Source: Trichoplax adhaerens | Lineage: Eukaryota; Animalia; Placozoa | Direction of reading: 5' to 3' | DNA: 64,000 nt | Assembly (NCBI RefSeq): GCF_000150275.1 | Contig: NW_002060943.1 | Coordinates: forward strand, 2,756,462-2,820,461 | Shown here: one piece after another, positions 142-59,848 of the stretch | Numbering within the stretch: the first letter of the stretch is position 1 | Layout of the letters: each line of letters starts with the position of its first letter | Position numbers and translations under genes: made by a program | Notes under the pieces: model-generated | What the model was told of the DNA's origin: nothing | Databases searched by the model: none | Seen by the model: the letters and a program-made list of their open reading frames with translations, nothing else

Positions 142-411
142 GCGGACTACTTTCTCTACTGTTACATACACCAAATATCAGCCTTTCCTATCGATAAAAA
201 GGCCAACTGGCCTAAAGATTATACAAAGGAATTAATGAAGCTAGCCAATTGGTGTCTAAGACATAAATATGAAGATCGACCATATATGAAGGAGGTTAGT
301 AGGGAGACTATCCAAGGTTTGATTTTGCCGTAATGATTACTAGATGAGCTTATATTATCTATTTATAAGGTGATTGAAAAGCTTTCAGAAATCGCTTCTA
401 AGACAAAATGA
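142..411 (+). CDS. K0: last two coding exons of a Pelle/IRAK-family K-type kinase gene (5' part lies upstream of the window)
   Basis: Exons 142-294 (ADYFLYCYIHQISAFPIDKKANWPKDYTKELMKLANWCLRHKYEDRPYMKE) and 370-411 (VIEKLSEIASKTK*) have AG/GT boundaries. The 153-nt exon has the same size and FPID...WP...LA.WCL...RP motif as exon 8 of K1, K2 and K4. Catalytic motifs are not visible in the window. Confidence 0.85.
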
Positions 412-1144
412 TTATCATGGTAATTATAAAAAATGAATGATTGCAGTAGCTGAAGAATTTACTCGAATAATTAAAATTACTAAAGAATACAAAATGATCT
501 TTAAATCATTCAAGATTGAAATAATTATGATTTTTTTGTCATATATCAGCGGTGCAAATAGCTTCCGAAGTGTGGCAATTAATTAAATATTGTGTCATCA
601 ATGATTTACTTTTATCGAGTAATTAATCATATGTTAACACCTAGCCATTAATAAACTATTATTAAATGTCGTAGAAAGTGTGTTGTGATTGTTGCAATAT
701 TCAATAAGTAGACTTGGCTATGAATTTATTATTGCTTGCACCAATGAAGTTTGTGAGGCTATATAAAAGCCTCAAAGTTCTTAAGAATCAAAATTTTATT
801 CTAAAAGCTACTTATTAAAATGACCGATTAAACTCACAACTTGCAATCTACTTCTAACAACTGATAACATTCTGCTATCGACTAACTTGTTAAATTCCTC
901 AATCAACGTGAGTATTCTATCGTCTAAGACTCGAATCTGAGTTGGTAGATTAAAGAGTGCGTAGAGTTAGTTGCTTAGATAGTTAAGACTACTTTTGACG
1001 AAAGAATCTAATTAATTTTTGTCGTACAATCTCGGTTATGACATCGAGATAACGTAATTAATGAAGAGCTATGATAGAAACTGCATCGATTCAATGATAC
1101 GATGTGATATATTTTAATCGCTAAGTAGTAACTGAGGGTATAAA

Positions 1145-4100: not shown

Positions 4101-4718
4101 CTTCCATTTCTTAAAAACGTAAGGCTGCTTGTTTGAAACGATTTTGTAAGAAGTGCTCAATTTACCTGACCAACCATTGCTGTTGCTCATACAATTTTCA
4201 ATTATCTTCAGGATAAAATAAGTAGCAAAATAGATAGAAATTGATTATACTGTCAAGAGATTTTATTTTAGTTGATTGTATGTAAATAATTTGATTTTTA
4301 TAGTTCATCGACAACAGAGACTTACTGATTGCATTACGGCCCTTTCATTATTACCAGGATTGCTTCTACTAGAAGTTAGCAAAATGTTACTGGCTATACT
4401 AGGTTGAGAGGTTTGAGCAGAAGAGGATGATTTCCTAGGCTATAACGTTACAAAATAAAACTACAATCAATCAAGAAAATCTCTTTATGTAGCAACAACG
4501 GCGATGATGTATTTACTCACTAACTAAGAAAGTTTAAGGTACGAGTGCTAACTTAATTTAACCATTTTAGATTGTAATTTTCCGCTCAATGGATTAATTC
4601 GGAGCCAGTTATAAGTAAAACACTCAAAAAGAATTATCCAATTTTGAAATTTATTTGCTGTACTTACAAAACAACAGCAGGTTTTAACTTGTTTGTCATC
4701 AGATTGACTCTCACCCAT
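1145..4718 (-). CDS. P1: Pelle/IRAK-related pseudokinase, about 337 aa, 10 coding exons, with N-terminal myristoylation/palmitoylation motifs
   Basis: Exons 4718-4668, 4439-4326, 4205-4095, 3122-3070, 2890-2791, 2697-2591, 1912-1732, 1644-1582, 1468-1295, 1204-1145 are all GT-AG and in phase, with no stops. Starts MGESQSDDKQVKTCCCF. Motifs: GWSGKLSTSY (Gly-loop), YVFKKW (beta3 Lys), LRHGNI, VHNNLKCTNVL (HRD to HNN), KLADGC (DFG to DGC), GYFCEE, NDIYSFG, CLAENAKERP. Confidence 0.88.
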
Positions 4719-6125
4719 GGCTGTCCTTCACCGATTGCTAAAGTAGTCAGCACTTAGGATTATCGCATTAAAAAATTAATAAGTCTACTTAGATGTCGAC
4801 TATTACTGTAGTAAGTAAACAGCAATCGGTCTTCCGATCGATACTTCAAAGCAGGTTATTGTTTAGATTAAATAATTTTGCGTCTATGAAGTACAATAGC
4901 AATCGAAATAAATGTCCCTATGGCACAACTTTGCTATATCAGCTAATTTTATGGGTCTTTCTTCACTCTAGCTAGCATAGGCATGTTTATACCACTGGCT
5001 AGATTGGTCAAGCTTTATGATGGCTTTCTTTAGTTATTGGTCTAGTTAAGACGCCATCCTTATAGGATGATACAGTTTTTGTAAGTCTAGGCGAGCGAAT
5101 AATCACAGTGATTGACAAGGAGATGAGACTTTTGCCCTTAACTCGAGAGTCGATGATTTACTCGCTAGCAAGCTTGTGGTGGAGTTCTGGGAAACTTGCT
5201 TATGATATAACAATGTCCCCTTGTTTATAACAATACCAGAACATTTTATGGAATGTTAGTAATGTAGAGACTATGAATAGCAGTCAGTGATTATTCTTAG
5301 CGTCCAACAAAAACAATCTACTGTCTACTATCCCAATTTTTGAAATATAAGAATATTATAGATGAAAGTAGAGAATTAATAAAGTAACTAGCATTCCAAA
5401 TTTCCAATCAGCCTTTATTGATTAATTTAGAGTCACTTTTTTGCACTTCTATTAATTCATAGCCAATCCATTTTTATACAGATTAGCCCATCTAGTTCCA
5501 ACTTAATTGTGGTCTTCCTTTCAATCACTTAATAATAAACTTGAAAGGTCTCTTGATGGGCTCTCTAATTATTATGCCTGCGGCCATATTATTCTCCTAC
5601 TGTGACTTTGTAGCGGGCAATAAAACCTTTTGTCTCTCTAAACTCTCTATGAGTTCGGCAAGACTTATCAAACTGCAGTTTCTGTACTAACAAGATAATT
5701 CTTTCAGCTTATAACGCCTAGAGCAAATTATCCATTGACATTTTTCACGGTTTATTAGTAAAGTTAAAAGGTAGGTAAGAAAGTTAATAAACGCACTTTA
5801 AATAATGCTTTCGGGTGGTTCCGGTTGCATGTAATTTTAATTGTTTACTTTAATTATTGATACAGTTGATTTGATGTAAATTTCACTAATCAAGGCGTTA
5901 TTGAACGCACTCCAAATTTAAAAAATTTTTTTCTAGTATTGCAGGTAGTCTGTTCTATCTAGCATTGTAACTAGAATGATATTTTGTCAGCTTCCTGCTG
6001 CAATTTGATAGATAATGAATTGTTTAATAATTACAATTAATCCTTTGCAGGTTTTTAGGCAAAACTGAAATTGATCTCCGATCTGGGCCTTATTTTAGTA
6101 TTACTTTACCGAGTTAGAAAAGAAA

Positions 6126-9100
6126 ATGGGAAACGGATGTTCATGTTTTAAGAGTCAGGTAAATTGTAGACTACAGAGAGTTCTGGTTGTTTGTCTGATA
6201 GCTATTTGTGAAGATCAATTACTGCTGTCACATACATAAAATGCGGTACTTAATTAATCTTAGAACATAAAGTTAAATTTTCTTTCAATCTCTATGCTTA
6301 CTTGATTGCAATTGAGACCATGTAAAATGATTAAATTACTTAGGAACGGGAATTATTGCCAACAGTTGGAGATTCGAGCTTTGCAATACAACCTAAGGTA
6401 TTACATTCTGTTAATGCTTACAGGATAGCGCTGGATATTTGTAACTATTTAAGGACGAACCATTATAGAATTATTTCCATCAAATTGTGCATTTAAGATA
6501 GTTAAACTTGTTCTAGGATGTAAATAGGGCAACAAATAACTTTTCTGATGAGTACAGGATTGGTAGAGGCGGTTTTGGGGAGGTCTATCGAGCTGATTTG
6601 GATCAACATGGCCACGTCGCTATCAAGCGAATTAAAAAAGATTTAGTAAGCAGCTTTTGAGGTTCATTGCAGTGTCTAAACTATCAGTATTTTATGATTC
6701 AGCAATATCAATTATAAAACGAATCAAGATTAGTAATTTGCTTATTTTAATCATCTGCTTAACATTTATTCAATAATCTAATGCTGATGCACTGAAAGTT
6801 ATCGATGGAAGATGAACGAGAATGTAAACTTCTATCTGAGTAAGAATTAATTACAACACTTGTATACTGAAAAATACACTACAGTAAATATAGTAAAGAC
6901 AGCTTATAAAATGTAAAGTAGAATCGATTTATCAAACGATCTTCCTTCAGAATTGCATCTATATTACACTAGAAGTTAGCATATGATTAAACCGATATAA
7001 TACTGCTTCTACATTCAGTAAGTTTCTATACGGTAGTAATTCGATGGTTACTACTTACTTCTAGCTATCAACATCCTAATCTCGTTCGATTTCATACTGC
7101 GTTGGTTGTTGATAAGCACCTGTGCATAGTTATGGAGCTTGTAGCAAATGGCAGTTTAAGAATAATGCTGAAAAATGAGGTAAAATCTTTTTTGCGATAT
7201 TAAAAGTATCTTCGTAAAGGTATCTCTAGGCTACTCCAACTTTATTTAATGAAAAATATGATGATGCTGTTCAAGTTCGAAATTTTGAATAAAATTAACT
7301 ATGGCTGTGATGTATTAACTGTTTCATGTAAACCATTTCGTTACGATCATTTTCATTTATATCAGTTCTTGTTCACATTCCAATGGAAACGTTATAATTG
7401 CTAAAACTTTATGAATTTCAGGGTGGAAATCTGGATTATAAAATCAGATTAAATATTTGCAAAGGCATAGCCAAAGGAATCAATTATCTTCATACAGCAT
7501 ATAGCACACATCTAGTACACAGAGACATAAAAACCGATAACGTATTGCTTACGGAAGACTACACGGCTAAAATATGCGATTTTGGTCTTGGAAAAATATT
7601 ATGTCAAAAATTTAATAGCGAAACCGTTATAACTAGCCACATATGTGGAACTGAAGCATATTTACCTCCAGAAGCTCTCCAAGGAAAAGTATCACGTCGT
7701 CTTGATATCTATAGCTACGGAGTTGTACGTATATATAATTATAAAAGTACGGTATAGAATCAATGCTATAATGGCTTGCAAGACTCATTTTTTTCATCAT
7801 TTTCTGGCAGGTATTACTTGAGATTCTATCGGGAAAATCACCTCTTTACAATGGTAGTGAAAAATGTCGTTTCTTGGTTAGTCCATATTCAAGTGCTACA
7901 TGAATACCATAGCATTGGATTATGTACACTGACATAAATATTGTATAGCTAGCCTATAATTTACATTTCAAAATGCAATATATTTTGGCATATATAGCAC
8001 TCATCATTATGAAAGCTCTCCTATTAGTTCGATTTTAATGGCCATATGCTATAAATCAATTACAGTGCTCGTATAAATGAAGAAGCTCTAGAATTACTGC
8101 TAATAATTACCATACCGAGAAATTGATTTGATATTTTGAGATGATGAAAATCGAAATCGACTTAACTTTAGACGCTCGAGTTCATTAAAAAAAACAAAGG
8201 ATTTGAGATTGATTCGTTGAAAAAATTAAATCAAAGACCTTCAAACTATATTTTATTTCAAAATATTTTTACTTCAATTCAACAATAGATAAAGTACTCA
8301 TATCTATATACTCGTAGATCTAGTGAATCTACTTAAGATTGCTACCGTTCTTGTTTTGAAATTAAGTACTTTTAAGAGCCCGTAAATATCGACAAACTAC
8401 TTGATAGTGGAGTTTGACAAGTATTTGTTACCTTTTCATACAGCAAAATGAATGCAGAAAATTTTTATAGTATTTTTAATAATCAAGGTCAAATTACTTT
8501 ATCTCTCCTACTAATTTATTATTGCCAAGTTACCATAATCTGAACGGTCAATACTAAATACTGTTAGAGAAGTTCAGTTTAATCCTAATCATATTTGCTA
8601 CGAATCATAAACTTATGTTAAGTTTCAAGCAAGAAAAATATCTCAGAAACTCTTATAATATTTATCAGTGCTCCATCGCTTAATTTTATCTATCATATAT
8701 TTAACCGATGATTTTTCCATTAGATATGATATGTGCTTGATAGGCTAAAATAATAGATAAAATTTAGACAAATGTTATAACAATATTGATAAATTGATTA
8801 TTCTAAAGTGCGTACATAATCCTTTTGAAATCATTATTAGGTTGGTCTATTTCATCTTCACTATAATCACAATAGAACCGCGTTTCCAATCGATGAAACT
8901 GCCAATTGGCCTAATGATTATAAAAGGGGATTAATGGAGTTAGCCAAATGGTGTCTAAAGACTAAATATAGAAAGAGACCTTTGATGAATCAGGTCGGTA
9001 GCAAGAATAGCTTAATTATTATACGGTACGTTCGATTTTATATAGATCGATTACTGAGTAAAATCTAAATTTTTATTTTATACGGTAAGGTGATTATCGA

Positions 9101-9137
9101 ATTAGAAAAAATCTTTTCCAGGAATGTTTGCGCGTAA
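6126..9137 (+). CDS. K1: catalytically intact Pelle/IRAK (RLK/Pelle family) kinase, about 313 aa, no death domain, predicted N-myristoylated/S-acylated
   Basis: Exons 6126-6158, 6344-6397, 6517-6645, 6799-6839, 7065-7179, 7422-7724, 7811-7876, 8841-8993, 9090-9137. Starts MGNGCSCFK. Motifs: ATNNFSDEYRIGRGGFGEVY, VAIK, HPNLV, NGSL, HRDIKTDNVLL, KICDFG, GTEAYLPPE, DIYSYGVVLLEILSG. Confidence 0.92.
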
Positions 9138-9380
9138 TTTCTTGAAGGATAGCCAATGATGGACATTTTTAAAAGCTTTTAATTTGCTTACTTGATCCTG
9201 AGGATGAACTAATGCTACATCTCCGCATGGATTAAAAATCAAATTTAGTTGATCGCAGAGTATCAGCTGGTTAAATGTGGGCAGTATCAAACAATTTTAA
9301 GAGTTCAACTTCATAGATTGTACTAACAATAACCGTAGTGTACTACTTATTTGTATAATGTACATTTAACTATTCATACC

Positions 9381-11833: not shown

Positions 11834-14767
11834 TTAATGGCTGCCAACGTTTCCTTTCCAGTTAATTAATAGCTGCTGACAGTTTTGCGATACCTGAAAA
11901 ATCGAAACGTAAATATTTAAAAGAATTCTAATTGCATTATGAATACATGCTGTGGCTTTCATTTAATTCTAATCGAGTCTTACCTTATCTATCGTAGGGC
12001 GATCTTGGGCAGTTTCAGAAAGACAATTAGCAGCTAAACCTAGCAGTGCTTTCCTTGGACGATCAGTCTTGAACATAGTTAATTTTTTGTTCCATTTTAT
12101 ATTTTCATCCTTAAGGTATTTCCAGTTCTTGTAAGAGGTATTTAATAAATATTCTTTCTGTCGAAAAAAATAGATATGTAAATAAAAATGAGTTAAGTAA
12201 AATCAACGCTGCAGCATCGAAAAGAATTTGCTTATTCTTATAAAACTATGCGCATTAAGAGAGCTAACCAACAGAGATGGCTTCCTATCTCTTGCATAAA
12301 TCGGCTTTCCAGAAACTATAACTAAACAAATCTAATCGAAATATCAAACAAAATAGAACATGTATTAAGTCTTATCATATGTAACTCAAATCAAGTTATA
12401 ACTTTCTTGATTTTACTTACTGCTCCAAAACTGAATATATCGTTAGAGAAAGCAATTCTTCCAGCTAGAGCTTCTTCGCAACAATAACCAATCTTATCAA
12501 TCTGGGTAGATAAAGCCAGTTTCACTTGCGTGTCATTGCCATTATTGATACATCCGTCGCTTAACTTTGCTATTCCTTTACTTCTGTCTATCAAAACATT
12601 TGTGCTGATAGATAAAAATGCAACTTTAATCGTAGCTACGGCATACATGATTATTTACAAAAGTATATAAATTAATGTAGATATTGAAAACAAGCTTTGC
12701 CCTAAGGTATCACTAATTTACGATATCTGCTTTACATAAGTGCGTATATTTCAATCATTGCAAGCTTAATGCTCAATTTTACCATTTTAGATCATTGTGA
12801 ACTAATTGACAATTGTGCAAATAGCGTAGTCCTTCCGCAATATCGCACATTATGGACAATCGCCCTTCACAGTGAGGTAATTCCTTCTTCTAAAATAAAT
12901 TATTATCACTTTTAGTAGCATTAATCATAAAGATTTGTTCTAACAGGAGAACTAGTTTCAGTCTACTAAAGTCGCGCAAAACTACTACCTTTACTAGCTG
13001 CTGAAGGGATAAAGGCAAAAATTCCTGAAGGAAGCCTTCAAGATCTTGATAGTAAGCAAAGACTTTTCGCACGTTTTTGTGCTTTAATCTACAGTATCAG
13101 AATTGGATTAAGGATATTATTAATAGGTGAATGCTTCGGCAAATTTAATAGATATCGAATAAGGTAAGGTAAAAAGAACTTAAAATTGTGATAAGGACAA
13201 GCACAATTTCAAGGCATACACAGTAACACTCTTCCATAAAGTCTCTGTGCATGATTTCTCTAGCTTACCGTACTAAGTCGTTGGCTATTTTTGTGTCGTT
13301 AGCAATATACTTATGGACAGCCTAACGAGAGATTAAAAGAAGAGGTCAAACAAACTATACAGTATTAAAAAGTTGACGTGGAAATACCATAATTTAATAT
13401 GAAAACTTGAATTATAATATAAAATATATTCTATTTGACATTGCAGTTTTAACTATGCTAAACTGAAAATATTTCAATTTAGATATATGCCAAGTAGCAA
13501 GGCTAAATAATAATTATATATATAATTAATAAACAGGAAGATAATTAAGGATTACATCCCATTCTGCTATTCTAATTAGTGGTATTGATTACTTAAAGTA
13601 AAATAATTAATAACTGAAATCCAAATAAAATCTTAGTCTGCAAAGCTTGGAATTTGAAGCTTACTAAGCTTTAAATCGAGAAAATTAAAACGTATTGTTT
13701 AATATACCGTAGTTGTGCTAGAGCTATAAACTATTCAGTCTGCTGCTTGAATTTACGGCTTAAAATTCATTACTATGTTGAAAGTAATTAAGTTACTAGT
13801 CTATAAATTTGATTAGATATAGAAGTTCATGCCATTTCTGTAGTAGAAAAGTATGATAAAATGTTTTATCTAGAAATTTGTGATTACTTCGTAATCCAAT
13901 GATGGTCAACGAGTCAGATTTACGAAATTTTGCAACTATTTTGATATCTAGCTAGATTAATCTTACTAATAACCATGATGCTTGTAAAGGATTAAACGGG
14001 ATAACATTCAATTGCTTTTGCAAGTAATAAATTAGACACAGCATTAATTCATTTCGATTCGGCTTTGGTAAAGGAAATTATTTGCCTTTTTCCAAAAAAT
14101 CCTATACCTCATTTTTCCAGGCCTTAAAAGTATAAATCTTTCCAGCAAATACAAATCGGTAAGTAACACTTGATGGACCTGGCCAACCTTGTCGTTTTGC
14201 GACATAATCTCTAATCGTCTTTATTAATAGCAGTAGTCATTGAATAGATATACGCATATATACATAAATTGGCCTTACAGTGACAAATTTCTAGTGAATA
14301 TATAGATTGGAAATTATTTTCATGCGATAATCGAAACTTACGGCATCTGGTACAGGGCCCAACCCATTGCCAATACAAGATTTTACAAACTTTTTCGAAG
14401 TAGCTAGATCGTCACTAACGTCGCGATGTTTAGGAATTCTACGAAAGGAGCGGAATAAATTCCAAGGCTATAGGTTGTAAGAAGAAAAAATCCACAATTA
14501 AAAAAAGAGCAAATTGATATCGTACGTCTAGACCATTATCAAATCTATACTATACGAAAGAAATTACAGAATGACTGATTTAGGTTATTAATCTAAATTG
14601 CCGATGAATTGGTTGACATTTAGTAGAGCCAAATCAGTATAGTTTAATGTAGTACAAGTATAGCTCCTCATCCCAGTTTTAAAATAAAGTTATCATACTT
14701 TGCTGCGAAAGTTTCTAATTCCATCGTCTTTAGTCTGTGGATTATCATTTAAATACCATTTCTCCAT
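11834..14767 (-). CDS. P2: Pelle/IRAK-related pseudokinase-type paralogue, about 348 aa (retains the catalytic-loop Asp as HND)
   Basis: Exons 14767-14699, 14467-14342, 14218-14108, 13321-13269, 13088-12989, 12889-12783, 12604-12421, 12331-12269, 12157-11984, 11893-11834 have the same phases as P1. Motifs: GWPGPSSVTY, YTFKAW, VHNDLKCTNVL, KLSDGC, GYCCEE, NDIFSFG. Exon 1 (MEKWYLND...) is less certain. Confidence 0.85.
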
Positions 14768-17387
14768 AGCTGTGATTAACCTTTAGTTAAAGTTAACATT
14801 CAATTTAAACTGTACAAGATTTTCCGTAGAATACGATTTATACGTAATATTAAATTGACCTAGCCAATCTCGACTTTCTTTCGTATGCCTTTGAATGGCT
14901 TTGACTAATAAGATGATAACTTGAATAGATGAGAATTGAACTTATTGTGGAAGATTTCAATCTAATCAATTGCTCGCGTCTGATCTTAGCGTTAATACGC
15001 CTATGAAAACTTACAAAATTTAAGCTATAGTCACTGTCGTCGAAATTAGAGTCAACAAAGCTAACAGAAGTAACCTGATCATTACAGGCTATACTAAATC
15101 GTTAGCAACCAATGAAACGGGATAAGTACCAGTAAAACTAAAAGATTGCAAAAAGCAATAAATGGAAACCGTAAACTAGTGTAGTAAAGACCATCATAAT
15201 TATTCTATAAAGAGATAGATAGTTTTATCGAGCTAATTCAAGTCATTCTTTAAATTTTAGTCAATTAATTTATCATAATAATAACTAGCATTGATCTATT
15301 TTCGATTGCCCTACTCATACAATAACAATGGGTGGTCACCGAATGTTAACTACTCTCCAATTGCATATCCTTCATGATTCTAACCAACTTGTTGCTAGCA
15401 AAATTATATGTTGGGCATTATCTTTGCAAAACTGATATAATCTACAGTATACTGAGGTTAATAATTAGAATTTATGGAACAAACATCAATCAGTCTCTCT
15501 CATCAACCCCAAGCAAGTTGTTTACTTCACGATCGTCATAGTATTCAATAATTAAATAATATACGTGTACAGTGGTGGAAGAAAAATAGCTTCTTCTAGA
15601 TCACTCTGTATGGGAGCCCTGTTTAATTTAAGTGAAAGTCTTTATCTATTTAGTACAATGGAATAGTTGGATAGCATAAGTGAATTCAATTATTGCATAA
15701 AAGCCTTCGTCCATTTCGTACAATAAATCAGTTGGATCATGCAAATAAAATAAGCGAAGAATCCCAGCACAAAACAATGGAGATAGCGTGCATTGATACA
15801 CTTTTACAATAGAGAAGCTCTGAAGATCGCTAATTCTCTGCATGGCCGCCAAAATGCCGGCGGGTATATATAGCGGTATTGTAATTTTTTCCATTTGAAG
15901 GAGTGTTGTGTACCGCTGTGATAAGACTGGCGGATAGAGTTAATCGGATTAGTTTATTAGCGTTGTTGTGTTCCTTAAATTTAAGCTTGCTTTACAAGAG
16001 CAGTTTGTGTTTTATGTAAAGCAAGTTTTAAGCTTGCTTTACAGCTTGATTGACAATAACAGCAAGTGTTATAACAGTAAGCGGTAATTTGCCGTTCGTA
16101 TCTCAATTAATTAATCAAGTTATTAAGTTTTTTAAATTGTTTTATTACAAAATATGTTAACCACAAATTTCTCACTATACTGCAATAGAAGTTACTGTAA
16201 TGCTTTCAGGCGTTAAAGTTTAAGCTATTTATCACTCAACGATCAAGCGATCAACGGCCAAAATTATGAAAATTGTATATTTTCAGCCGCACGGCCAACA
16301 TCTAAATAACGATCAGATGATGTCGCTGGTTATTCAGTTACAGGCTTTATACAGAAAATGCTTCACTAGCAGCAGTGACTTGCCAACCATCTATAAAAAA
16401 AACTAGCTGAAATGCAATCTATAATAACCCAAAAAGCATTACTGGTTCCGACCCTTACATGCATAGCTATGGTAAACAGATACTAGATAGACCAAATTAA
16501 GATCTAGAACATCACTTAATATAAACGTACATTCCATATACGGTACATATAGATATACAGACAGACTAAAATTTGATGGGGAGGTTAATCAATGGGTGGC
16601 CCAGATTTCGCCTAGTACAGTACTGTCAGCAATCGCGATCCAAGCTAAACTTGAGCCGAGCAGTTGCTTCGTATCCTAAAATCTCTGCGAACTAACAACG
16701 ATCCTTAAGCAGGTTTATTAACAGTCTAATCTTACTAATCTGCTGATTTCTACATTTCCACGCATTAGTATTCTACTTATTTATCGGTGCAGAATGAAAA
16801 TTCATAATATACACGTAGATTTGTATAGTCTCTTCTTTTCCTCACTTTATTTCCTCAGTGAATCTGAAGATACTTATTTACAGCATACATTCAATCCAGA
16901 CAAGGTAAACTCTGCCTGATTGAACTTAATTTTGTTTCTATATTTATTCTCAGTTTTCTAGTAAGTTAAATGAAAATATTGGTTTTCAAGTTGTATTTTA
17001 CGACGAAAGCATCTTCCATTCGGTCAATTTCTACTATTGGCCTCGCTAGCCCTGTAATCTCTCGTTTCATGAGAAAGTCTTCTTGTATATCTACTTTATT
17101 TACGATTTAATTCAGATATAGATTAACCTTACGCTAATTTATTAGTAATGAAAGGCTTGCTTAAAAGACTTAAAATTAAAATAAGCTTTAAAGGAAAAAT
17201 ATTGTAGTTGCTAGCATTAGTTAGAATGCCCAACAACACTATTACAAAAAATAGGCTCATTTTTGATTCCATTGCTTCTCTACTGAGAAGAATTTCAATG
17301 CATAAATAGAGGATAAGGGTTGACTATTTCTTATTTAATCTCTGATATAGGCAATATTCAAGTACCAGACCGAACTGAAAATAAGAT

Positions 17388-20300
17388 ATGGGGATAATTT
17401 GTGCATGCTGTAAGAGACAGGTAAATAATCGAATATTCCTGGCTGTTGCGTTGATAACTACAGCACTTGCAAAATTACTATCGCCGTGTCAAATAGTATG
17501 CCATGAGTCTATTATATCAACATTTTAACAAGACTACAACTGCGGTTATATGTATGAATTACACGATTAGCCACGACTATTGCTGATAGACCCCAGTGAA
17601 GATTTAGATTTTGATATACAAGCTGAGGTATATTATATTTCCATCGCTTATAGCATAGTACCAAATAAATGCAACAATTCATGATAAACAATTATTTAAG
17701 TTCTTCCGTTCAGATATTGATACATGTAAATTGAATACGTAAACGGTTATAGGATATAAAGAGGGGCACAAACTATTTTTCCTATAAAAACAGGATTGGT
17801 GCAGGTGGCTTTGGAGAAGTCTATCGAACTGAAACATTATCTTATGGCATTCTTGCCGTCAAAAGAATGAAAGAGCAATTAGTAAGCAATTTCTGCAAGT
17901 GGTATTGAAATAACTTACCTAGAAATTTTAATGTCTAATAATTTTAATTTATTTATGAAACGAATCAATTCTATTAATTAATATATTTTTAATGACTTTT
18001 TGACATCTTATTCTGCTATCTATTGGCGAATATGGTAAAGCTTACAGTAAATGATCTACTAGAATGTCAAAATATAATCCAGTAAGTCTCGACTACTCGT
18101 TTATTTGATTTTGTACAGTACCATTAGTTAATGTACTGTATATCTTAGTTCTAGTTTATAAAATAAAGACCACGATTACGTATTTAGACTAATTTATGAT
18201 AGGAGTTTCCTTTAGAACTACATTTACAGTACACCTTATCATTTCATTAGGCACCTGTAAAAAAGAGTATGATTGTTTATGTAGGCTGAGTTGAGATAGC
18301 ATTTTCTTTTAGAACTATACTTGCTGTATACTGTATACTTTAAATTGAATACATGGTTAAACGCTTGTATGATAATGCTTCTATATTTATTAAGATTCTA
18401 CAGCACTAAGACATTTACTACTGGCTTCTAGATATAGACATACTAATCTCGTCTGCTTGTTTTCCGCCTTGATGGTTGACAACCACTTTTGCATGGTGAT
18501 GGAATACGTAGCAAATGGCAGTTTAAGATCAAAATTGAAGGCAAAGGTAAATTGACGCTTTAATAGTAATTTAGAGGAATATTTCCAAATTACTCTAACC
18601 CTATTAATGGGAATATTACGATTGTTACTCAAAATCATGACCTTTTAATAAGATTGATGATGACACATAAATTATTTTATGTTAACCGTAACATAGTAAT
18701 TACTTCTTCGATACTATAGTAGTAATTGTTCATAGCTTGAGTAGAATCAATTATAATTACTGCAATTTTACTGATTCCAGGATGAAAATTTAGACTATTC
18801 GGTTAGGCTACAAATTTGCAGAGGCATAGCAGAGGGAATCAATTATCTACATACAGCGTTCATGACATATCTTGTACACAGAGATATTAAATCTGATAAT
18901 ATATTGCTTACGGAAGACTATACTCCCAAAATATGCGATTTCGGCCTGGCAAAAATATTATCTGCAAGAATAGATCATGGAAATAGTGCTATATTTACTG
19001 AAACTATATGTGGGACTGAACCTTACTTACCTCCAGAATCATTTCAAGGAATAGTCTCACGGCGTTTTGATGTCTATAGCTATGGAGTTGTACGTATATT
19101 GACCTAATAGTCAACAATCTAATCTATAGAAGCTCGTAACTATCAGTTATTCTGTATCAAATATCTGGCAGGTGTTACTAGAAATTATATCAGGAAAACC
19201 AGCAACCTTTAGTGATCTGGAAGGGTGTCGCTTCTTGGTATGTCTGTATTCATGTACTGTACTAAAACTATAACATTGAATAATGTCTATGCAACGCGAA
19301 TATGATACAACTAATGTTTTATACATTTAACTACAAATAATATGACACCCTTAAAGTAGAATCATTGATACAATCGGTGTTAGTTAGATTTCTACCATAA
19401 AATATAGTACTATTAACTAACTGCAGTGTAAAATCATTTTAATTATTGTTAGTAGCTACTTTATAGGAAGTAGTTTGATATTTTTAGCCTTATATAAGCC
19501 AAAATTGACTTAAGTAGAGATGCTCGAGTCTGGTATAAATTTTTATGAACATTGCACTTTATTCTAAAATGGCCTGTCCTCTATTATAAATAAATCTCAG
19601 AGCTTGAACATACTTTATTCAAAAAATATTGTTGCCTGAATTTAGCAAACAAATATTTCAATAATCTCTACGCAGGCTTAGCTAAAATAATAATTTGATC
19701 GAAGGGCTTAGGTATACATGATTCAGAAAATATTTTAGCTTAGATTTGACCAGTAACTGTTCTAATAATCCCTGTGTGGGCCCAGCTAATCTAGTTTTTA
19801 TTCAAGGTTGCTGCCGTTCACGATTTGAAAATAACTATCAAATGAAGTTGTAAAACACTTATTGATCCTCTAATTTTTGCTTTTGATGAGTATTTTTGTT
19901 AATTTGTATAAATACGAAATTAAGGCAATAATTCCTACAGTACGATGGTATATAAAACTATAGTTGGTGTGCTTTCTTATCTATCAATTATACTGTTAGT
20001 CAAACTTTTCATAACTTGATAGACAATATAGAATAGTGCTAGAGCAATTCGCTGTAAGTATTGGTGAGTGATGAGCGCATTGTTTAGTAATATGAACTAA
20101 GACAAAATATTATTCGAAAGGGATTTCTTTAAACATTTTACAGCATGCTTTAGTCTTTACCGATGCCTTTTCATGGTCTACCTCCAAATTTTATCATATA
20201 TTTGCTTCATCTTTGATAATATAATTAATTAGTTGTAAAATCTTTTTCATTGATTAAAATGATAGAAAAATCTGATCTATAAACTTTAGTTTTATAACAA

Positions 20301-20674
20301 TAGTGAAAAATTCACTATTCTAATCCGCTTGTAATGCTGTCATTATTCAATGACCACTAGGCCAATTACTTTCTTCATTGTTACAATCATGATAAATCAA
20401 CGTTTCCAATCGCTGAAACGGCTTCTTGGCCTAATAATATTAAAAAAAAACTAATGAAACTTGCAAAGAACTGTCTAAAGCGCAATTACAGAGACAGACC
20501 TCAAATGGATAAGGTCAGAAGCTATAGTAATCTTACGCTCGATTTTATCGTAAAGAATACTTTTATTATCTAATTTATTTTTATTTTAAGGTGACTACTA
20601 AACTTGCAAAGATCAATTTAATGCAAGATAATTCTCCTGACAGTAAACTGACAAGGTTCTTCTCGCGCATTTAA
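17388..20674 (+). CDS. K2: catalytically intact Pelle/IRAK-family kinase, about 328 aa, no death domain, predicted lipid-anchored
   Basis: Exons 17388-17420, 17571-17627, 17753-17881, 18041-18081, 18432-18546, 18781-19089, 19172-19237, 20361-20513, 20591-20674. Starts MGIICACCKR. Motifs: IGAGGFGEVY, LAVK, HTNLV, HRDIKSDNILL, KICDFG, GTEPYLPPE, DVYSYG. Confidence 0.92.
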
Positions 20675-37954: not shown

Positions 37955-40463
37955 TTAAATGCCCAATAAGATATAAAAAAAATAAAGTGCAAAATACTTG
38001 TCTGCAAAACAATTTAAAACCTAATATGACAGAAGAAAAATAGTCCAACTTTGGCCTAGGATTATTGATAGGTATAAAGTTATTAAAATTATAAGGTACT
38101 ATGATGTATGCTTACAGAAGATATGTCCGGCCTTTTATATCGGTTATCTTCCAAGCAAACTTTCGCTAAGGCTAATAATTTCCATGCAAATTTTTGCGGC
38201 CATTTTGCTACTGGATCAAGAGGGAAACTCCATTTATCATAGGCATAGCAATACTGAAAGTATTGAGCCTGAAATTGATAAAAAGAAAATAGATTTTCTC
38301 ATAGTTGAAATTACCTTAGGAGAGCTTAGTCTTGCAAAAGGATATTATTTAACTGACTTGAAGAATAATAAAAATGTTCAGTCAAACATTAGTGAATTCT
38401 TTATTCATTCATCGTTTTTATTTTAAATTGTAAAGTAGGATTAGTTGATAATTGCATCAATAGAACGATAGAAAGTGGTCTGCTTATTGAATGTCACGAC
38501 TTGTCAATCATTAAGCATGCAGAAGTATAAATTTTACTCTTCTCGATATAAGGATAAGTCACGCAACAAACTACCTCAATATTCTTACTGATGCCATTAA
38601 CTACGTCAACTATTTATATTCCATCTACTTCACGATTCTAAATGTATTTTTCTTTGCAAGTTATCCTTGATAACTTACTAAGTAACGGTGTTTACGATTG
38701 GTGGCACAATTGGCTTTGCCTGAAACAACTTCAAGTATCACCTAAAACAGATAGAAATATCCTCTTTAAGCGTTTCTATCAATTGAATAGCCATTAGAAA
38801 TGACTTAACAGTTGAATGTTTGAAATTTGAACTGACCACACCAAAGCTGTAGATATCAAATCTTCTGGAAATAATACCAACCCGAGCTTCTGGCGGTGCA
38901 TAACCTCGAGTACCTGCATTATCTTGAGCTATAGTTACACTCGTATTATTTTTTCCACCATATATTACTGTCACCAATCCAAAATCGCATATTTTTGGAA
39001 CATAATTCTGATCGAGTAGGATATTCGCTGTTTTAATATCTCGATGAATTAAGGAGTAATGAAATCCAGTATGAAGGAAACGAATCCCTTTAGCGATTCC
39101 TGCGCAAATTTGTAATCTGACTATATAATTTAGATTGCAATCCTGTTTTAACAAACCAAAATTGAGCTTTGTCAATATCTAGAACCAATTTCATCCTCGA
39201 CTTCATTACTTAACAAGAGAAGTTAGCAATTGCTGATATCACGTATAGTATGTAATCAAGTGAAATAATGAAAAGGCTTATTGGATTTTTTCCCTAAAAG
39301 TAAAATATTTTACATCAGCTACATCTGAACAATATAACCTTTTCTTTCAAGTTCGATTTTAAACTGCCATTGCTCACATACTGCATAATTAAGCAGTGGT
39401 GGCCTTTGACTTGCATAGATTGATATAATTTAACCAAGTTGGAGTGCTCGCATCTAATGTAAAATAGATCATGAATGAAAAGCGAAACAAACACTATGTT
39501 TGCATTTAAACTGACATACAATAAACACTGCCAAAGCAGAAACTGATTTATTTGAAGGAGAGTAAACTAATTCAATGTCACCGAAGTAATGATTGTCTTA
39601 TCTTCCAAATGCTAATGTTACCGTATGTAAATAGTCGATTAGTCATAGACCAAAAATATTGCGTCAATCTAATAAAGATATTTATCAATTATAGATGAAT
39701 AATCCGTCTTACTGCATAAGATATTGATTTTCTGTTCGAAATTCCTTGGAAACCTACTCATAAAAATCACGTTGAAAGTGCGAGCACAATAGTAAATTTG
39801 GTGTAGATCATTAATTTAATCCCACATAGTTTCGTCTTTAATCGTACTTATTCTATCAGCAAGTGATGGAGGCTATACTACTAAGCATTTTATTATTCAA
39901 TTAAAACGAATGACTAGAATAAAAAATTTAAGAGAATCATAGTAAAACATAGGATTGAAGTTTATCCTTTCTACTTACGCCATCCTTAATTCGTTTGATA
40001 GCAACAACGCCATAGGACGGTAGTTTACCCTTATAAACCTCACCAAAACCACCACTTCCTATTTTATATTCTTCATTAAAATCGTGAGTCGCGGCAATTA
40101 TATCCTAATAGAAGTGTGAGAGAAATAGCGACAATTGCTTGTTACTACAGTTTTAATCTATCGAGGTGTATTTAGAAAGGGATAATTTGATGAATCCAAA
40201 TTATAGGACAGTTGGAAATGTTTAGTCTTGTAGTCGATTATTTAAAGTTGAGAATCAATTTTACCTTAGAACAGATCTTGACATACTGGCAATCATTATT
40301 AGCGTTGATCGGTAATGATTTTTGTTGTTGCTGTCGTGGTAAAAGGAATAGGATAGGTTAGACGATATAGATTACTCTGAGAAAAAATGGATTATAGCGT
40401 AAAAAATAGACAAATCGATTCTTTAACCTTACGGTTACACTTTTTAGAATAGAGACACCCCAT
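37955..40463 (-). CDS. K3: catalytically intact Pelle/IRAK-family kinase, about 323 aa, divergent K paralogue, predicted N-myristoylated/S-acylated
   Basis: Exons 40463-40428, 40330-40265, 40104-39979, 39753-39713, 39453-39339, 39142-38837, 38741-38679, 38268-38116, 38020-37955 (last exon less certain). Starts MGCLYSKKCNRK. Motifs: ATHDFNEEYKIGSGGFGEVYKG, VAIK, HSNLV, HRDIKTANILL, KICDFG, GTRGYAPPE, DIYSFG. Confidence 0.9.
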
Positions 40464-46400: not shown

Positions 46401-46416
46401 ATAATATGCGCACTTA

Positions 46417-49400
46417 TCATGCCTTGGAAGCGATTCTTATGAGATTTGCGATTATCTTGTAAAAGTTAAAAATGAAAAGTAACCTAATTACATTGACAAT
46501 AAAATCGAATTATGGATTTCTCTTACTACTGACCTTGTCCATGTAGGGTCTATCTTTATAATTATCCATTAGACACCATTTGGCTAGCTTCGTTAATCTC
46601 TTTACGAAATCATCCGGCCAATTAGCATTTTCATCGATTGGAAATTTTGATTTACAGTGTTTATAACAGTAATGAAAGTAGCCAGCCTAATTGCGAATTA
46701 ATATCGGTAACGTTATAAGCAGTTTAAGACAGTCAATTTATCTTTATAGCGTTTGCCATTTTAATCCGTTAGATAGACTTCGTATATGATGCAAAACTAG
46801 AGTTAAGCAAACGAATGCCATCATTTGAGCTAGCTAAGCTGAAAAATATTCTCATGATTTCAGCAACCCTCTCTTTATTAAATTTGATATTAGCTCATAC
46901 TATGGACCAACGGAAATGTTTAGAATTTAGGTAAATTTCTTTAGCGATGCTTTCATACCAGTTACTCAACCTAAGGAAATTCAGTAATAATAAATTGGTG
47001 AAGTTGCGGAGAATAAACTGATTATGGTTTTGAGTAGTGCTGCTACAATTATGGTCTTAATTTTCTTATGAAAATTAATAATTGCCGTTGCTGAATTCAA
47101 CAACCAGCGAGTCTATGAGTGTTTTATAGGTCTACGCAATGTTTAAGTTGAAACGTGAATGGTAACAATTTCGATTAACAACTGTATCAGTTTGACCTAC
47201 ACAGACTTCATTAGCGTATTTATTTGGAAAGTTTAAATTTGAACATTTGCTGATAATATATATTTAGGTTCTTTGATTTAATTACATGTATTATCTACTG
47301 GCTCTAGTAATTTAATTAAGAGCTAACTACACCACTCCTTGTCAAATTTTTACCAATCTCCAGTATCCCAATAATGCCGATTTTGACCTGTAATAGCTGA
47401 AGATGTCAAGTCGTCAAATAGCGATGTAGTGATGCACTGATATTTGATTATGCGGATAGCTATATTTGATATAGTTAGGTTGCTTTGAATAAATATTATC
47501 GCGAAGCTAATATTAGATGATTGTTAACTACTATATTAGAAATTGCTGATGACTAATAGTAGCCAGTTGACTAATTATGGTGCAAGATTTATGTAGCTAG
47601 AAATACTGCAGTTGTTAAGGTGCCCTTCGGAGAATGGGCCTAGACGTTAATAGAGGAGTAGTGATATCTTAAGTAGAATGATTTAGATTGTAGAAAATAA
47701 TGATGTACTATTAGAGAAAAGTATTTTGTTTGATGATTTATATCTAATTGTAGATTAATCAAGTTGTTTCAAATGGATTTAACGAAATGTGCATAAGAAC
47801 TACAGAGATAAGCTCACAGAGGAGAAGAGACTTCACTTCGTTTTAAGCTCGGAATACTTTCGATTTTAGACTAGATTCTTATAATAATTAATTATTGCTC
47901 TACTATTCCTAAAACTTTGTAATGTAATAGAAGCCTTTTAGAAAATACGATTTGACTAAGATAGTTGTTGTGAGACGCATTTACTACAAGCTACTAGCAA
48001 TAATTTTATAATATTTTACTTTTACAGTATCGTTATTAATTTATAGTTCATGATTCTGGAAATCTAGCGAACATCGAGCACACTGTTAAAGACGTATAAA
48101 TCTTTCGGAATTTCTTTGACTTACTATATAAAATTTGAGCTATATACGTGTAATAATTGCTTTCATACATGCTCTCCAATATTGTGGCGTCAAAGTGAAG
48201 CAGGGGTAATTAAGTATGGACTTACCAAATACCGATATCCTTCTTTATCACTAAAGAACGCTGATTTCCCTGATATAATCTCAAGTAATACCTTCCAAAT
48301 AATGATATATAGTAGTTGATAGAAATGAACATTTATAAATTCGATTACATACTATTCGATCAATACACTTACAACTCCATAGCAATAGACATCAAAGCGA
48401 CGTGATATTATTTTTTGATATGCTTCTGGAGGTAAGTAAGCCCGAGTTCCAATGATGTTTTCTGTAATGGCGGTACTATCTCTATCCGTTCTTGTAGATA
48501 ATATTTTTGACAAACCGAAATCGCATATTTTAGGAGTATAATCCTCCGTGAGTAATATATTATCAGTTTTAATGTCCCTATGTACGAGATATGTCCTAAA
48601 TGCAGTGTGTAGATAATTGATTCCTTTGGCTACGCCTATACAAATTTGTATTCTGACCCAATAATTCAGAATTTCATCCTGAAATTTTTAAAATTTTAGT
48701 AATTATGATAGGTTACATTAGAGTATGAGCAAATCTTTGTGTTGATGGAATGACTGGTATCAACTCGATTCTCTAAAGTACTTCATGTATAACAATTACA
48801 GTTTATCCTATTAGAGTTTTCTAGCTATGACTGTAGCTGTATTAATATTTCTCATCAATGACCATTACAGTCGTCTAGCGTTAATCAAGCTTTCTACTAA
48901 GGTCCTTTTTTATGAGTCAATTTACCTTCGCTTGTAATCTTGAATTTAAACTGCCATTGGCTATGAACTCCATCACCATACAAAGGTGGCCATCAATCCG
49001 TAATGAGGTATGCAATCGAACGAGATTAATATGCTCATATCTAGAAGTAATTACTATCTAAGTATTCTAGGATATACAATATCGGTATGCTATCGTTTTG
49101 TTAATATTTCTAATTAAAACAGATGCCGCAGTAAACGATAGACAGTACTGTCTTAAATGGTTATAACCGTTCCGTCTAACTATTTAATTTTATAAACTAT
49201 GTTCATTGCATTAACTACGATGCAGTAAATAATCTACGAAATAGTTGATGCTTACTGAAATAAAAGTTGACACTCCCGTTGATCATCTGTTGGAATCTGT
49301 TATTATATCGGTGAGACACCATAGAAAAGCATTACACCGATCATCAAAAGTACGCAAATTGATGGTGTGGATCCATATCGTAATTGAAATTTATGAAAAT

Positions 49401-49971
49401 AAAGTAGTAATCTACGAGGTGCTTTGATAACATTTACTAGATTACTTACCAAATTCTGCTTAATCCTTTTGATGGCAACGACGCCAAATGAATGCAACTT
49501 CGCTCGGTATACTTCACCAAAGCCGCCTGCTCCAATCATGTGCTCCTTCGAAAAATTAGCTGTTGCCTTCTTTATATCCTAGAATAGTGAAATTTTAGTA
49601 AATCATGCTTCAATGGAAACAGTTTGAGTATAAATCATCAATTACGGTAACTACGGCTGGTAGCATCCTGTATAACATCTGGATAAGATACCTTAGCTTG
49701 TATTGCTAAACTCGGATTTCCATTGCAGGATGGTGTAATCAATGGTTGTTGCTAATTCATTGCAGTCAAGTTACAGTTATTTTAATACAGAGATTCGAAT
49801 TAAAGTATGCGTACTGTATTAGTGCTAATTCGTGAAGTATTTGATGTAGTTACAGTAATTAATTAATGTATGCCAACAGCCGTCAAAGGAGCAATCAGAA
49901 ATAGCCTACTGTGAAAACACCTCTTCGTTGATGATCTTAACTTTCCTACATAAGACATAAATGGTTCCCAT
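46417..49971 (-). CDS. K4: catalytically intact Pelle/IRAK-family kinase, about 312-319 aa, no death domain
   Basis: Exons 49971-49942 (or -49921; two in-phase donors), 49751-49692, 49578-49450, 49296-49256, 49040-48926, 48678-48373, 48291-48226, 46686-46534, 46455-46417. Starts MGTIYVLCRK. Motifs: ATANFSKEHMIGAGGFGEVY, VAIK, HINLV, HRDIKTDNILL, KICDFG, GTRAYLPPE, DVYCYG. Confidence 0.9.
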
Positions 49972-59776: not shown

Positions 59777-59848
59777 TTCCCACACCGGGAATCGAACCCG
59801 GGCCGCCTGGGTGAAAGCCAGGAATCCTAACCACTAGACCATATGGGA
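59777..59848 (-). tRNA. tRNA-Glu: tRNA-Glu, anticodon TTC (UUC)
   Basis: TCCCATATGGTCTAGTGGTTAGGATTCCTGGCTTTCACCCAGGCGGCCCGGGTTCGATTCCCGGTGTGGGAA is 72 nt. It has acceptor stem TCCCATA/TGTGGGA, anticodon loop CTTTCAC, T-loop TTCGATT, and A- and B-boxes. Confidence 0.97.

Follow-up and report, generated by a model that had tools for sequence, protein, structure and literature searches.

A placozoan-specific tandem array of death-domain-less IRAK/Pelle/RLK-group kinases and predicted pseudokinases in Trichoplax adhaerens

Introduction

One stretch of Trichoplax adhaerens DNA, 64,000 nucleotides long and here called the window, carries nine paralogous, intron-bearing kinase-domain genes (TRIADDRAFT_51558 to 51565) of two kinds, predicted active kinases (K) and predicted pseudokinases (P). 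What are these proteins, and does their arrangement reflect a shared function? A sequence-only reading had presented them as a candidate undescribed system of lipid-anchored kinases with cognate pseudokinases.

“Undescribed” has to be withdrawn, as the genes are already annotated (TRIADDRAFT_51558-51565, RDD38101-38111) and Kamm, Schierwater and DeSalle 2019 (PMC6321704) report death-domain-less IRAK-related kinases “in a tight genomic cluster” in Trichoplax sp. H2, with TrispH2_009235-009242 as placozoan-specific paralogs. The H2 proteins RDD38101, 38103, 38105, 38108 and 38111 are the K genes of the array, while the locus tags of that paper skip 009236 and 009238, apparently P1 and P2 (a mapping inferred from the numbering). 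In the available text of the paper the word “pseudokinase” has 0 occurrences, the two classes are not separated, and the acyl and Cys-cluster N-termini, the alternation and the second cluster are not mentioned. The class split, the predicted anchors and the gene anatomy are new here. According to the same paper, placozoans have many downstream parts of the Toll pathway, with no true Toll-like receptors and no death-domain IRAK, so the signal route to the kinase step is an open question.

Gene content and layout

The order and strands of the genes are K0+ P1- K1+ P2- K2+ P3- P4- K3- K4-. Coordinates below are positions in the window.

Upstream of the window (within about 2 kb), + strand: first seven exons of K0, start MGGICSC
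142-294 (exon 8) and 370-411 (exon 9), + strand: last two coding exons of K0 (TRIADDRAFT_51558); public models P0059, P0273
1145..4718, - strand: P1, pseudokinase, 10 coding exons, 337 aa; RNA junctions and P0276; N-terminus MGESQS then a TCCC cluster; HNNLK for HRD, DGC for DFG, no glycine loop
4668-4718, 4326-4439, 4095-4205, 3070-3122, 2791-2890, - strand: first five P1 exons
2591-2697, 1732-1912, 1582-1644, 1295-1468, 1145-1204, - strand: last five P1 exons
5174..5650, no strand: gap between the divergent 5' ends of P1 and K1, candidate bidirectional promoter, from contig ends and depth bins
6126..9137, + strand: K1 (TRIADDRAFT_51560), active kinase, 9 coding exons, 313 aa, MGNGCSC; model equals P0274; catalytic motifs complete; 5'UTR exon end near 5938-5944
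6126-6158, 6344-6397, 6517-6645, 6799-6839, 7065-7179, + strand: first five K1 exons
7422-7724, 7811-7876, 8841-8993, 9090-9137, + strand: last four K1 exons
11834..14767, - strand: P2 (TRIADDRAFT_51561), 10 exons, the last uncertain; P0279; HND (aspartate kept), DGC; glycine loop, N-terminal Met-Gly and Cys cluster all missing
14804..14896, - strand: relic open frame like P exon 3 (against P3 exon 3, E = 4e-4), just before the P2 ATG
17388..20674, + strand: K2 (TRIADDRAFT_51562), active kinase, 9 exons, 328 aa, MGIICACC; P0275
22554..25195, - strand: P3 (TRIADDRAFT_51563), 10 exons; P0277 and P0278, both skipping exons; MEENYF then a TCCC cluster; HNNLK, DGC
27518..32591, - strand: P4 (TRIADDRAFT_51564), 10 exons, 2.3-kb intron between exons 3 and 4; P0280 (same 5' exons); MEPRST then a CHGGCC cluster; HNC, DGC
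38089..40463, - strand: K3 (TRIADDRAFT_51565), active kinase, 310 aa, MGCLYSKKC; P0152
46417..49971, - strand: K4, active kinase, 9 exons, MGTIYVLC; partial public model P0065

In number, position, order and strand the genes agree with the earlier description, and the ATG-to-ATG distances proposed there (about 1.4 and 2.6 kb) come to 1407 bp for P1/K1 and 2620 bp for P2/K2. The frames, said to be intact, are all open, and the exon models agree fully or almost fully with public proteins. K1 is identical to P0274 (313/313) and K3 to P0152 (310/310), P1 matches the Trichoplax sp. H2 protein P0276 at 335 of 337 residues, and K2, P2 and P4 correspond equally or nearly so to P0275, P0279 and P0280. 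Canonical splice sites and intact ten-exon frames are present in all P copies. The relic frame suggests that the 5' end of P2 was remodelled. In practical terms the gene anatomy is now corrected, several public models skipping exons, and each copy is listed as predicted active or dead, which is of use for bench tests.

Two further genes, P0- and Kx-, extend the array on the upstream side of the window. On contig C1410 lies a second cluster, far more diverged, in which a K-like gene (+) is followed by a P-like gene (-), twice. Some relatives lack a partner within 10 kb (K-like on C1371; P-like at C1410:2.546 Mb), and the array itself has same-class neighbours (P3-P4 and K3-K4). The alternation had been read as a functional signature; an exact runs test on the class labels gives p = 0.21 for the nine genes and 0.26 for the 11-gene extended array, so no functional explanation is needed. 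Strict alternation fits a K-P segment duplicated in tandem. The window contains no sensor gene, NLR-type or other, and the genes past the array are GST-fold.

Family membership

Both classes belong to the IRAK/Pelle/RLK group, as had been proposed, with IRAK4 the best solved-structure match of each. For a K1 exon, IRAK4 comes top (E = 8e-25), followed by FERONIA, SOBIR1 and BRI1. For P1 exon 7 it is the sole family at E <= 0.01, and full-length P1 matches it at E = 4e-18, the runner-up family reaching 6e-13. The predicted P1 fold (pLDDT 81.8) has IRAK4 in all of its best 50 fold matches. K0 has its best non-placozoan matches in plant RLK/Pelle kinases and animal IRAKs, with identities of about 34-40%.

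In the tree, which is unrooted and has no non-TKL outgroup, P is monophyletic (100/100), as is K (99/96). Plant RLK and animal IRAK rows join K in an unresolved fork, and P is a long-branched sister to all three. Five intron positions in the kinase domain are common to K and P, in the same phase and at alignment columns equal or 1-2 apart; a sixth follows the RP motif of subdomain XI. These common introns argue that P belongs to the same group. P is a separate, old subfamily; K is its paralogous counterpart, also old, and the gene structure is common to both. The array represents a tandem expansion, specific to placozoans, of kinases of the IRAK/Pelle/RLK group that lack a death domain.

Active-site motifs

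The division into active kinases and pseudokinases is upheld by the motif table and the tree alike. All catalytic motifs are retained in K0-K4, and the K genes, of about 310-330 aa, are predicted from these residues to be catalytically competent. The P genes (about 340 aa) retain the beta-3 lysine, the catalytic-loop asparagine and the metal-binding aspartate; the glycine loop and alpha-C glutamate are gone from every copy. At the HRD motif, P0, P1 and P3 have HNN and P4 has HNC, with the aspartate kept only in P2 (HND); DFG is replaced by DGC in P1-P4. Further afield, cP1 has HEN, while cP2 and cP3 have HNN and have lost the DFG aspartate too. If a pseudokinase is a kinase lacking the beta-3 Lys, the HRD Asp or the DFG Asp, then P0, P1, P3, P4 and cP1-3 are pseudokinases. 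P2 has Lys, HND and DGC, a formally complete triad, with no glycine loop or alpha-C Glu; given this K/D/D triad and its missing anchor motif, it is possibly unlike the other P genes. Changes also occur on the K side, where Kx has KFD for DFG, and cK2 has Arg for the beta-3 Lys and has lost HRD.

As for the gatekeeper, it is Met in K0-K4 and Kx, Leu in P1 and Tyr in two animal IRAK rows. A tyrosine gatekeeper is the defining residue of the IRAK family.

N-terminal regions

The first K exon is 30-36 nt long and encodes Met-Gly with nearby cysteines, a predicted SH4-like signal for N-myristoylation and palmitoylation. We took as SH4-like a Met-Gly start with a small or hydroxyl residue at position 6 and a Cys in the first 10 residues. 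Such starts are found in K0 (MGGICSC), K1 (MGNGCSC), K2 (MGIICAC), K3 (MGCLYSKKC) and Kx (MGCLFSC), K0-K3 having Gly2, Ser or Ala at position 6 and a Cys close by. K4 (MGTIYVLC) has Val at position 6, which makes the fit doubtful. Most P genes have an acidic stretch and then a cysteine cluster at the N-terminus; the cluster is seen in P1, P3 and P4 (3/4), and a Met-Gly start only in P1, with Glu at position 3. P2 has neither. The description “lipid-anchored” is thus a prediction from sequence motifs that suits K0-K3 well and is doubtful for K4.

No death domain is present in K or P, where the kinase domain begins about 30 (K) or 55 (P) residues after the start. The RNA-supported 5'UTRs of P1 and K1 have in-frame stops upstream of the Met-Gly start codons, and Kamm, Schierwater and DeSalle 2019 likewise describe the domain as missing.

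Expression and sequence constraint

P1 (9/9 junctions) and K1 (the first five) are represented in RNA contigs of three studies. The P1 transcript has its 5' end near 5155-5173 and coverage of the K1 5'UTR exon starts from about 5650, with the boundaries of the 5174..5650 gap approximate because RNA contigs cannot fix a start site. The two 5' ends are therefore about 500-600 bp apart, within the distance of about 1 kb used to define head-to-head genes. P1/K1 is a genuine head-to-head pair with both genes transcribed, and the two are co-present in the same whole-animal RNA samples. For P2/K2 the spacing is known as the ATG distance of 2620 bp.

The P genes are not decaying. Between paralogs, dN/dS is 0.25-0.48 for P (dS around 1) and 0.2-0.37 for K. 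Exon-level P orthologs were found in ENA and Logan contigs of placozoan-like genomes (identities of 49/60 for P4, 41/64 for P0 and 49/64 for cP3), each nearest to one paralog and keeping the SDGC or THGG motif. Compared with a close relative (“organism B”), P1 has 9 non-synonymous and 1 synonymous changes, a count not significantly different from the neutral expectation (p about 0.27); recent constraint on P1 looks weak, or selection is diversifying.

Duplication history and pairing

With introns included, blastn identity is 68-71% between K pairs and 69-73% between P pairs. The relations of K0-K4 in a K-only tree form a star, and only the clade P1+P2+P3 is moderately supported (91/95).

Complex prediction of the K1 and P1 kinase domains scored 0.47, against 0.00 for the best of 3 controls, in a band of the score where passes are more often wrong than right. 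Of 78 solved complexes, 51 attained the score mark, as did 2 of 108 mismatched pairs; at scores of 0.60 or below the solved complexes attaining it numbered only 5 of those 78, and all 4 passing mismatches fell in this range. The three K1/P1 runs agree in at least 94% of contacts, with partner pLDDT of at least 67. The K1/P1 score may reflect solved kinase dimers, and it does not separate cognate from non-cognate K-P pairs. In silico, then, physical pairing of K and P is weakly supported.

Taken as a whole, the data are probably best explained by a tandem expansion of K and P genes whose products are lipid-anchored, with P acting as a non-catalytic partner of K. A two-gene K-P segment would have been copied in tandem in one burst, giving the K+ P- alternation, as suggested by the pairwise DNA identity of about 68-73% in both classes, introns included. 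K and P would sit on the inner membrane face through their lipid anchors, which could stand in for the death domain as a recruitment device, and P might serve as scaffold or allosteric regulator of the K kinases, on the model of IRAK2/IRAK3 for IRAK4/IRAK1 and of Tube for Pelle.

Alternative explanations

Two alternatives concern the nature of P. The P proteins, at least P2, could be atypical active kinases, given that P0-P4, all five P genes on C1414, keep the beta-3 lysine, the catalytic-loop asparagine and the DFG-position aspartate and that HND gives P2 the full Lys/Asp/Asp triad. We consider this improbable, since no P has a glycine loop or alpha-C glutamate, Asn or Cys stands at the position of the catalytic aspartate in P0, P1, P3 and P4, cP1-3 have lost this residue as well, and cP2 and cP3 are also without the DFG aspartate. 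That the P genes are decaying, non-functional copies might be argued from their degenerate catalytic motifs and from the excess of amino-acid changes in P1 against its close relative. This is largely refuted, and its probability is negligible: the ten-exon frames are intact with canonical splice sites in all copies, three studies show P1 transcripts with correct splicing, dN/dS is 0.25-0.48 at dS around 1, diverged genomes hold paralog-specific orthologs with the same degenerate motifs, and the kinase fold is predicted confidently.

Other alternatives concern what the arrangement means. The alternation may be no more than a footprint of duplication, left when independent subfamilies that were once neighbours were copied as a segment; there would then be no specific neighbour pairs, and K and P could act in unrelated processes or partner any family member. 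The runs tests, the unpaired K-like and P-like genes elsewhere, the same-class neighbours, the similar DNA divergence of K pairs and P pairs (consistent with segmental copying) and the weak K1/P1 complex support all favour this explanation. It is set against the return of K+ then P- in a second, far more diverged cluster, the 5' ends of P1 and K1 about 0.5 kb apart in the same RNA samples, and the recurrence of kinase-pseudokinase partners in this family (IRAK4 with IRAK2/3, Pelle with Tube), and we give it a substantial minority chance. On another reading, lipid-anchored K and Cys-cluster P would be obligate membrane-bound heterodimers that replace the death-domain Myddosome as a signalling hub downstream of TIR or other receptors, with neighbours co-regulated and co-evolving. 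This seems unlikely; if true, the array would be an animal counterpart of the plant RLCK and pseudokinase immune modules. A plant-like guard or decoy system, in which P mimics K as bait for microbial effectors and a sensor triggers defence, would suit the clustered and expanded family, the architecture resembling that of RLCK-VII and ZED1/RKS1 (a lone kinase domain with an N-terminal acyl motif) and the mostly amino-acid changes of P1 (9:1). That count is not significantly off neutral (p about 0.27), however, the window has no NLR-type or other sensor gene, with GST-fold genes beyond the array, and individual P paralogs are conserved in placozoan-like genomes, unlike fast-turnover decoys. We regard such a system as very improbable.

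Comparison with known systems

The kinase domain of animal IRAKs (IRAK4/IRAK1 active; IRAK2/IRAK3 pseudokinases) and of Drosophila Pelle/Tube is the best sequence and fold match of K and P, and in those families too active kinases stand alongside catalytically impaired paralogs. The IRAK family is linked to Toll/IL-1 signalling, whose downstream parts are present in placozoans. Unlike canonical IRAKs, K and P have acyl motifs in place of the N-terminal death domain and thus cannot join the Myddosome in the known way. Membrane-anchor signals at this place, together with conserved dead-kinase paralogs, suggest an alternative, recruitment by lipid anchor with a pseudokinase partner. K and P also differ from animal IRAKs in the gatekeeper (Met in K and Leu in P, not Tyr) and in their many, clustered copies.

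Lastly, the array offers an animal case for comparison with plant receptor-like cytoplasmic kinases. The RLCK-VII proteins (BIK1/PBS1/PBL2, Pto) consist of a lone kinase domain of the same superfamily with an N-terminal acylation motif of the Met-Gly-Cys type, and together with the RLCK-XII pseudokinases (ZED1, RKS1/ZRKs) they show active and dead kinases coexisting in clustered genes, as in the array. Plant RLCK/RLK proteins are among the best non-placozoan matches of K0. We know of no NLR partner for the placozoan kinases. In the tree K is a placozoan clade of its own (99/96) outside the plant rows, and the acyl motifs of the plant RLCKs and of K and P are possibly convergent.

Gene models of the kinase array

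The array is real, expressed and conserved; its IRAK-like kinases, some active and some dead, have predicted membrane anchors where death domains would be. The window, at G000:C1414:2756462-2820461, is AT-rich (~31% G+C) and contains no long bacterial-type ORFs. A six-frame motif scan recovered four genes with intact GxGxFG, VAIK, HRD and DFG. Their exons, used in tblastn, found four far weaker minus-strand relatives, and also a fifth kinase gene (K0), represented by its last exon at 142-330. The active kinases are termed K0 to K4 and the pseudokinase paralogs P1 to P4.

Genes of the array, with matching public proteins
142-411, plus: K0, last exons; the body of the gene lies upstream of the window
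1145-4718, minus: P1 (P0276, 335/337 identical)
6126-9137, plus: K1 (P0274, 313/313 identical)
11834-14767, minus: P2 (P0279, same N-terminus)
17388-20674, plus: K2 (matches P0275)
22554-25195, minus: P3
27518-32591, minus: P4 (P0280 shares the 5' exons at 32.2-32.6 kb)
38089-40463, minus: K3 (P0152, 310/310 identical)
46417-49971, minus: K4

This order and these strands are as read from the sequence beforehand, and the public proteins bear out the exon models. The ATG-to-ATG distances, 1407 bp for P1/K1 and 2620 bp for P2/K2, agree with the earlier figures.

RNA contigs from three independent studies, mapped on 1250-7249, give all splice junctions of P1 and, for K1, the first five; each of these junctions is GT..AG. 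These two genes served as templates, with intron phases kept, and complete stop-free models were obtained for K2, K3, K4, P2, P3 and P4. Alignment, trees and dN/dS used the joined spliced models built from the window sequence. Homology searches used single exons, or public proteins that match the models exactly or almost exactly.

In terms of public annotation, the window exons encode TRIADDRAFT_51558 to 51565 in Trichoplax adhaerens and RDD38101 to 38111 in Trichoplax sp. H2. The public K0 models (TRIADDRAFT_51558, RDD38101) skip a 41-nt alpha-C exon, the K1 model (TRIADDRAFT_51560) is without its N-lobe, the P3 models (TRIADDRAFT_51563 and the H2 version) skip two or more exons, and the P4 model (TRIADDRAFT_51564) skips exon 8. 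The H2 protein names SD1-6, CRCK2, EMS1, MSP1 and SRK were carried over from plant proteins and are misleading.

Upstream genes and a second cluster

Relatives were found upstream on the same contig (C1414) and on another contig (C1410).

Relatives outside the window, with locus handles
G000:C1414, within about 2741200-2749300, minus: P0, a fifth P gene (L005, L001)
G000:C1414, within about 2741200-2749300, minus: Kx, K-derived, frame intact (L005, L001)
G000:C1410:6560001-6600000: second cluster, in the order cK1+ cP1- ... cK2+ cP2- cP3- (L003, L006, L004, L007)

Kx starts with MGCLFSC and has HGD, with KFD in place of DFG. Since this member of the K lineage is degenerate in addition to the P class, pseudokinases arose at least twice in the family.

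The C1410 cluster is far more diverged than the window array, and is older. In cK2, Lys is changed to Arg and HRD is lost. The three P-like genes cP1-3 have the extra catalytic-loop intron of the P genes and an N-terminal acidic-plus-CCC motif, with DFG still present in cP1. There is also one lone P-like gene and one lone K-like gene, each with no partner within 10 kb.

Catalytic motifs, gene structure and N-termini

In an alignment of K and P with animal IRAKs and one plant RLCK, all catalytic residues are kept in K0-K4. The glycine loop and the alpha-C glutamate are missing in P0-P4, where HRD has become HNN, HNC or HND, DFG has become DGC, and APE a C-E/Q-E/D motif. P0-P4 do retain the beta-3 lysine, the asparagine of the catalytic loop and, at the DFG position, the first aspartate. 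HND, with its catalytic aspartate, is found in P2 alone.

In a 25-row tree both classes are monophyletic: P (8 genes, three from the second cluster) has support of 100/100, and K (7 genes) has 99/96. Five kinase-domain intron positions are common to K and P, at the same column or within 1-2 columns, with phases 0, 2, 0, 0, 0; a sixth shared intron lies six residues past the RP motif, in subdomain XI. One additional intron, inside the catalytic loop, is present in P. Because intron positions and phases are shared, K and P are old paralogs and not unrelated kinases.

As for the N-termini, every K gene and Kx has a first exon of 30-36 nt that encodes Met-Gly plus one to three cysteines. The usual myristoylation pattern is seen in K0-K3 and Kx, with K4 a doubtful case. 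P1, P3, P4 and cP1-3 begin with an acidic stretch and then a cluster of cysteines, and P1 is the only P protein with a Met-Gly start. Lipid attachment is predicted from these motifs.

P2 is the odd one out (11834-14896), with neither Met-Gly nor a cysteine cluster and with HND retained. A relic exon-3-like frame (14804-14896) lies directly upstream of its start codon.

Expression and constraint of the P genes

The sequence-only reading had named silent P genes, or a dN/dS near 1, as evidence against it. P1 is transcribed and spliced, with all nine junctions in RNA of three studies. Between paralogs, dN/dS ranges over 0.25-0.48 in P and 0.2-0.37 in K, at a dS close to 1. An exon-level profile search of ENA and Logan contigs revealed four P-like open frames (P0268-P0271), each nearest to one paralog (P4, 49/60 identical; P0, 41/64; cP3, 49/64 and 43/64). 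The SDGC or THGG motif is retained in all four, and the read-through of their flanking introns is unrelated. Because these foreign frames are paralog-specific and carry the degenerate motifs, the individual P paralogs and their motifs are older than the separation of those genomes. In view of the transcription and splicing of P1, the dN/dS values and these foreign orthologs, we reject decay as an account of the P genes.

Counting against constraint on P is a non-synonymous excess in P1. Compared with organism B, a close relative present in RNA data (run X15), P1 has 10 exonic differences (1295-4205), 9 non-synonymous and 1 synonymous, a count too small to tell relaxed from diversifying selection. 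Five of the nine amino-acid changes are in codons 273-289. K1 differs at 1/373 sites, and the introns have diverged by about 2%.

Origin of the alternation and pairing of neighbours

The alternation of the two classes had been taken as a functional pattern. We dropped it as a sign of function, as the labels are not unusual in an exact runs test (p = 0.21 for 9 genes, 0.26 for 11 genes), and alternation needs no functional cause. A K-P segment copied in tandem, in two steps, would give the order K0 P1 K1 P2 K2 P3. With short introns included, blastn identity is 68-71% among K0, K1, K2 and K4 and 69-73% among P1, P2 and P3; given this similarity, both sets come from one burst. The 25-row tree contains ((K1,K2),K0) and ((P1,P2),P3), a topology compatible with two-step duplication. 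In the mirror-tree comparison this K topology was lost, the K-only tree being a star, and P1+P2+P3 (91/95) was the sole clade to survive. No intergenic similarity that would bound the duplicated unit was found by blastn, with matches limited to exons and short introns. On these comparisons, K-P co-duplication is plausible.

In terms of neighbour pairing, the divergent 5' ends of P1 and K1 are about 500-600 bp apart. Transcripts of both were recovered from all three RNA data sets, where contig depth gives no ranking of their expression. One complex prediction with the K1 and P1 kinase domains scored 0.47 (best of three controls 0.00), a value that may reflect solved kinase dimers and is blind to which family member binds. 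Contact agreement between runs was at least 94% and partner pLDDT at least 67. The mark is reached by 51/78 solved complexes and 2/108 mismatched pairs. Passes with a score of 0.60 or less come from only 5/78 solved complexes, and they include all 4 passing mismatches. By the predictor's own statement, passes of this kind are wrong more often than right, except where the pairing was already a likely one. The prediction gives weak support, and we count it as no more than a small upward nudge for binding. We treat K-P neighbour pairing as a hypothesis, and an immune decoy role of the array as another. What the sequence-only reading had observed is confirmed, and its interpretation, of paired modules in innate immunity, is supported only in part.

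Other features of the window

Features outside the kinase exons
53787-55814, minus: gene with GST_N_4 and GST_C_6, metaxin or FAXC-like GST fold
58364-59504, minus: second such gene, in tandem
59777-59848, minus: tRNA gene (Rfam RF00005, 64 bits), adjoining the GST-fold genes
59971-60411: ORF with no Pfam match
9349-9732 with 10497-10876: local direct repeats (all such repeats about 250-450 bp, 73-76% identity)
30059-30929: local direct repeats
33181-34074: local direct repeats
35027-35545: local direct repeats
47440-47923: 486-bp stretch in the K4 intron, with a 74% identical match 4 kb upstream of the window

The GST-fold genes lie directly beyond the kinase array and have a weak Tom37 match. 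The direct repeats are intergenic or lie within the long P4 intron. They and the K4-intron match may represent a dispersed repeat or the remains of a transposon.

Relation to earlier descriptions and to known IRAKs

The cluster had been put forward as undescribed; it is already public, through Kamm et al. 2019 (PMC6321704) and database proteins. In its passages on these genes, that paper describes several Trichoplax IRAK-like genes, none of which has a death domain. The word "pseudokinase" is absent from it, and the locus tags it skips, 009236 and 009238, appear from the numbering to be P1 and P2. No literature mention of TRIADDRAFT_51558 to 51562 was found. Among the matches listed for Trichoplax and pseudokinase, none was on this IRAK-like family by title or abstract. 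The Najle 2023 supplements yielded neither the gene numbers nor "IRAK", and the kinases go unmentioned in Mayorova 2024. Additions to the 2019 description are the K/P class split, the predicted anchors, the gene structure common to both classes and the second cluster.

Lastly, the proposed IRAK/Pelle/RLK membership is supported by IRAK4 as best match in both sequence (K1 exon, P1) and fold (P1 model). The K1 exon matches IRAK4 best (E = 8e-25), with plant RLKs next. For P1 exon 7, IRAK4 is the sole match at E <= 0.01, and full-length P1 reaches it at 4e-18, the next family being at 6e-13. The AlphaFold model of P1 (pLDDT 81.8, residues 1-46 disordered) has IRAK4 in all of its best 50 fold matches. 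Outside placozoans, plant RLK/Pelle proteins and animal IRAKs are nearest to K0, at 34-40% identity. A representative-protein search with the K1 exon returned mostly multi-kinase plant proteins, and also recovered the Trichoplax models.

A death domain is absent: in P1 and K1, in-frame stops precede both start codons within the RNA-supported 5'UTRs. The gatekeeper is Met or Leu, compared to Tyr in canonical IRAKs. These placozoan kinases differ from canonical IRAKs in missing both the death domain and the Tyr gatekeeper.
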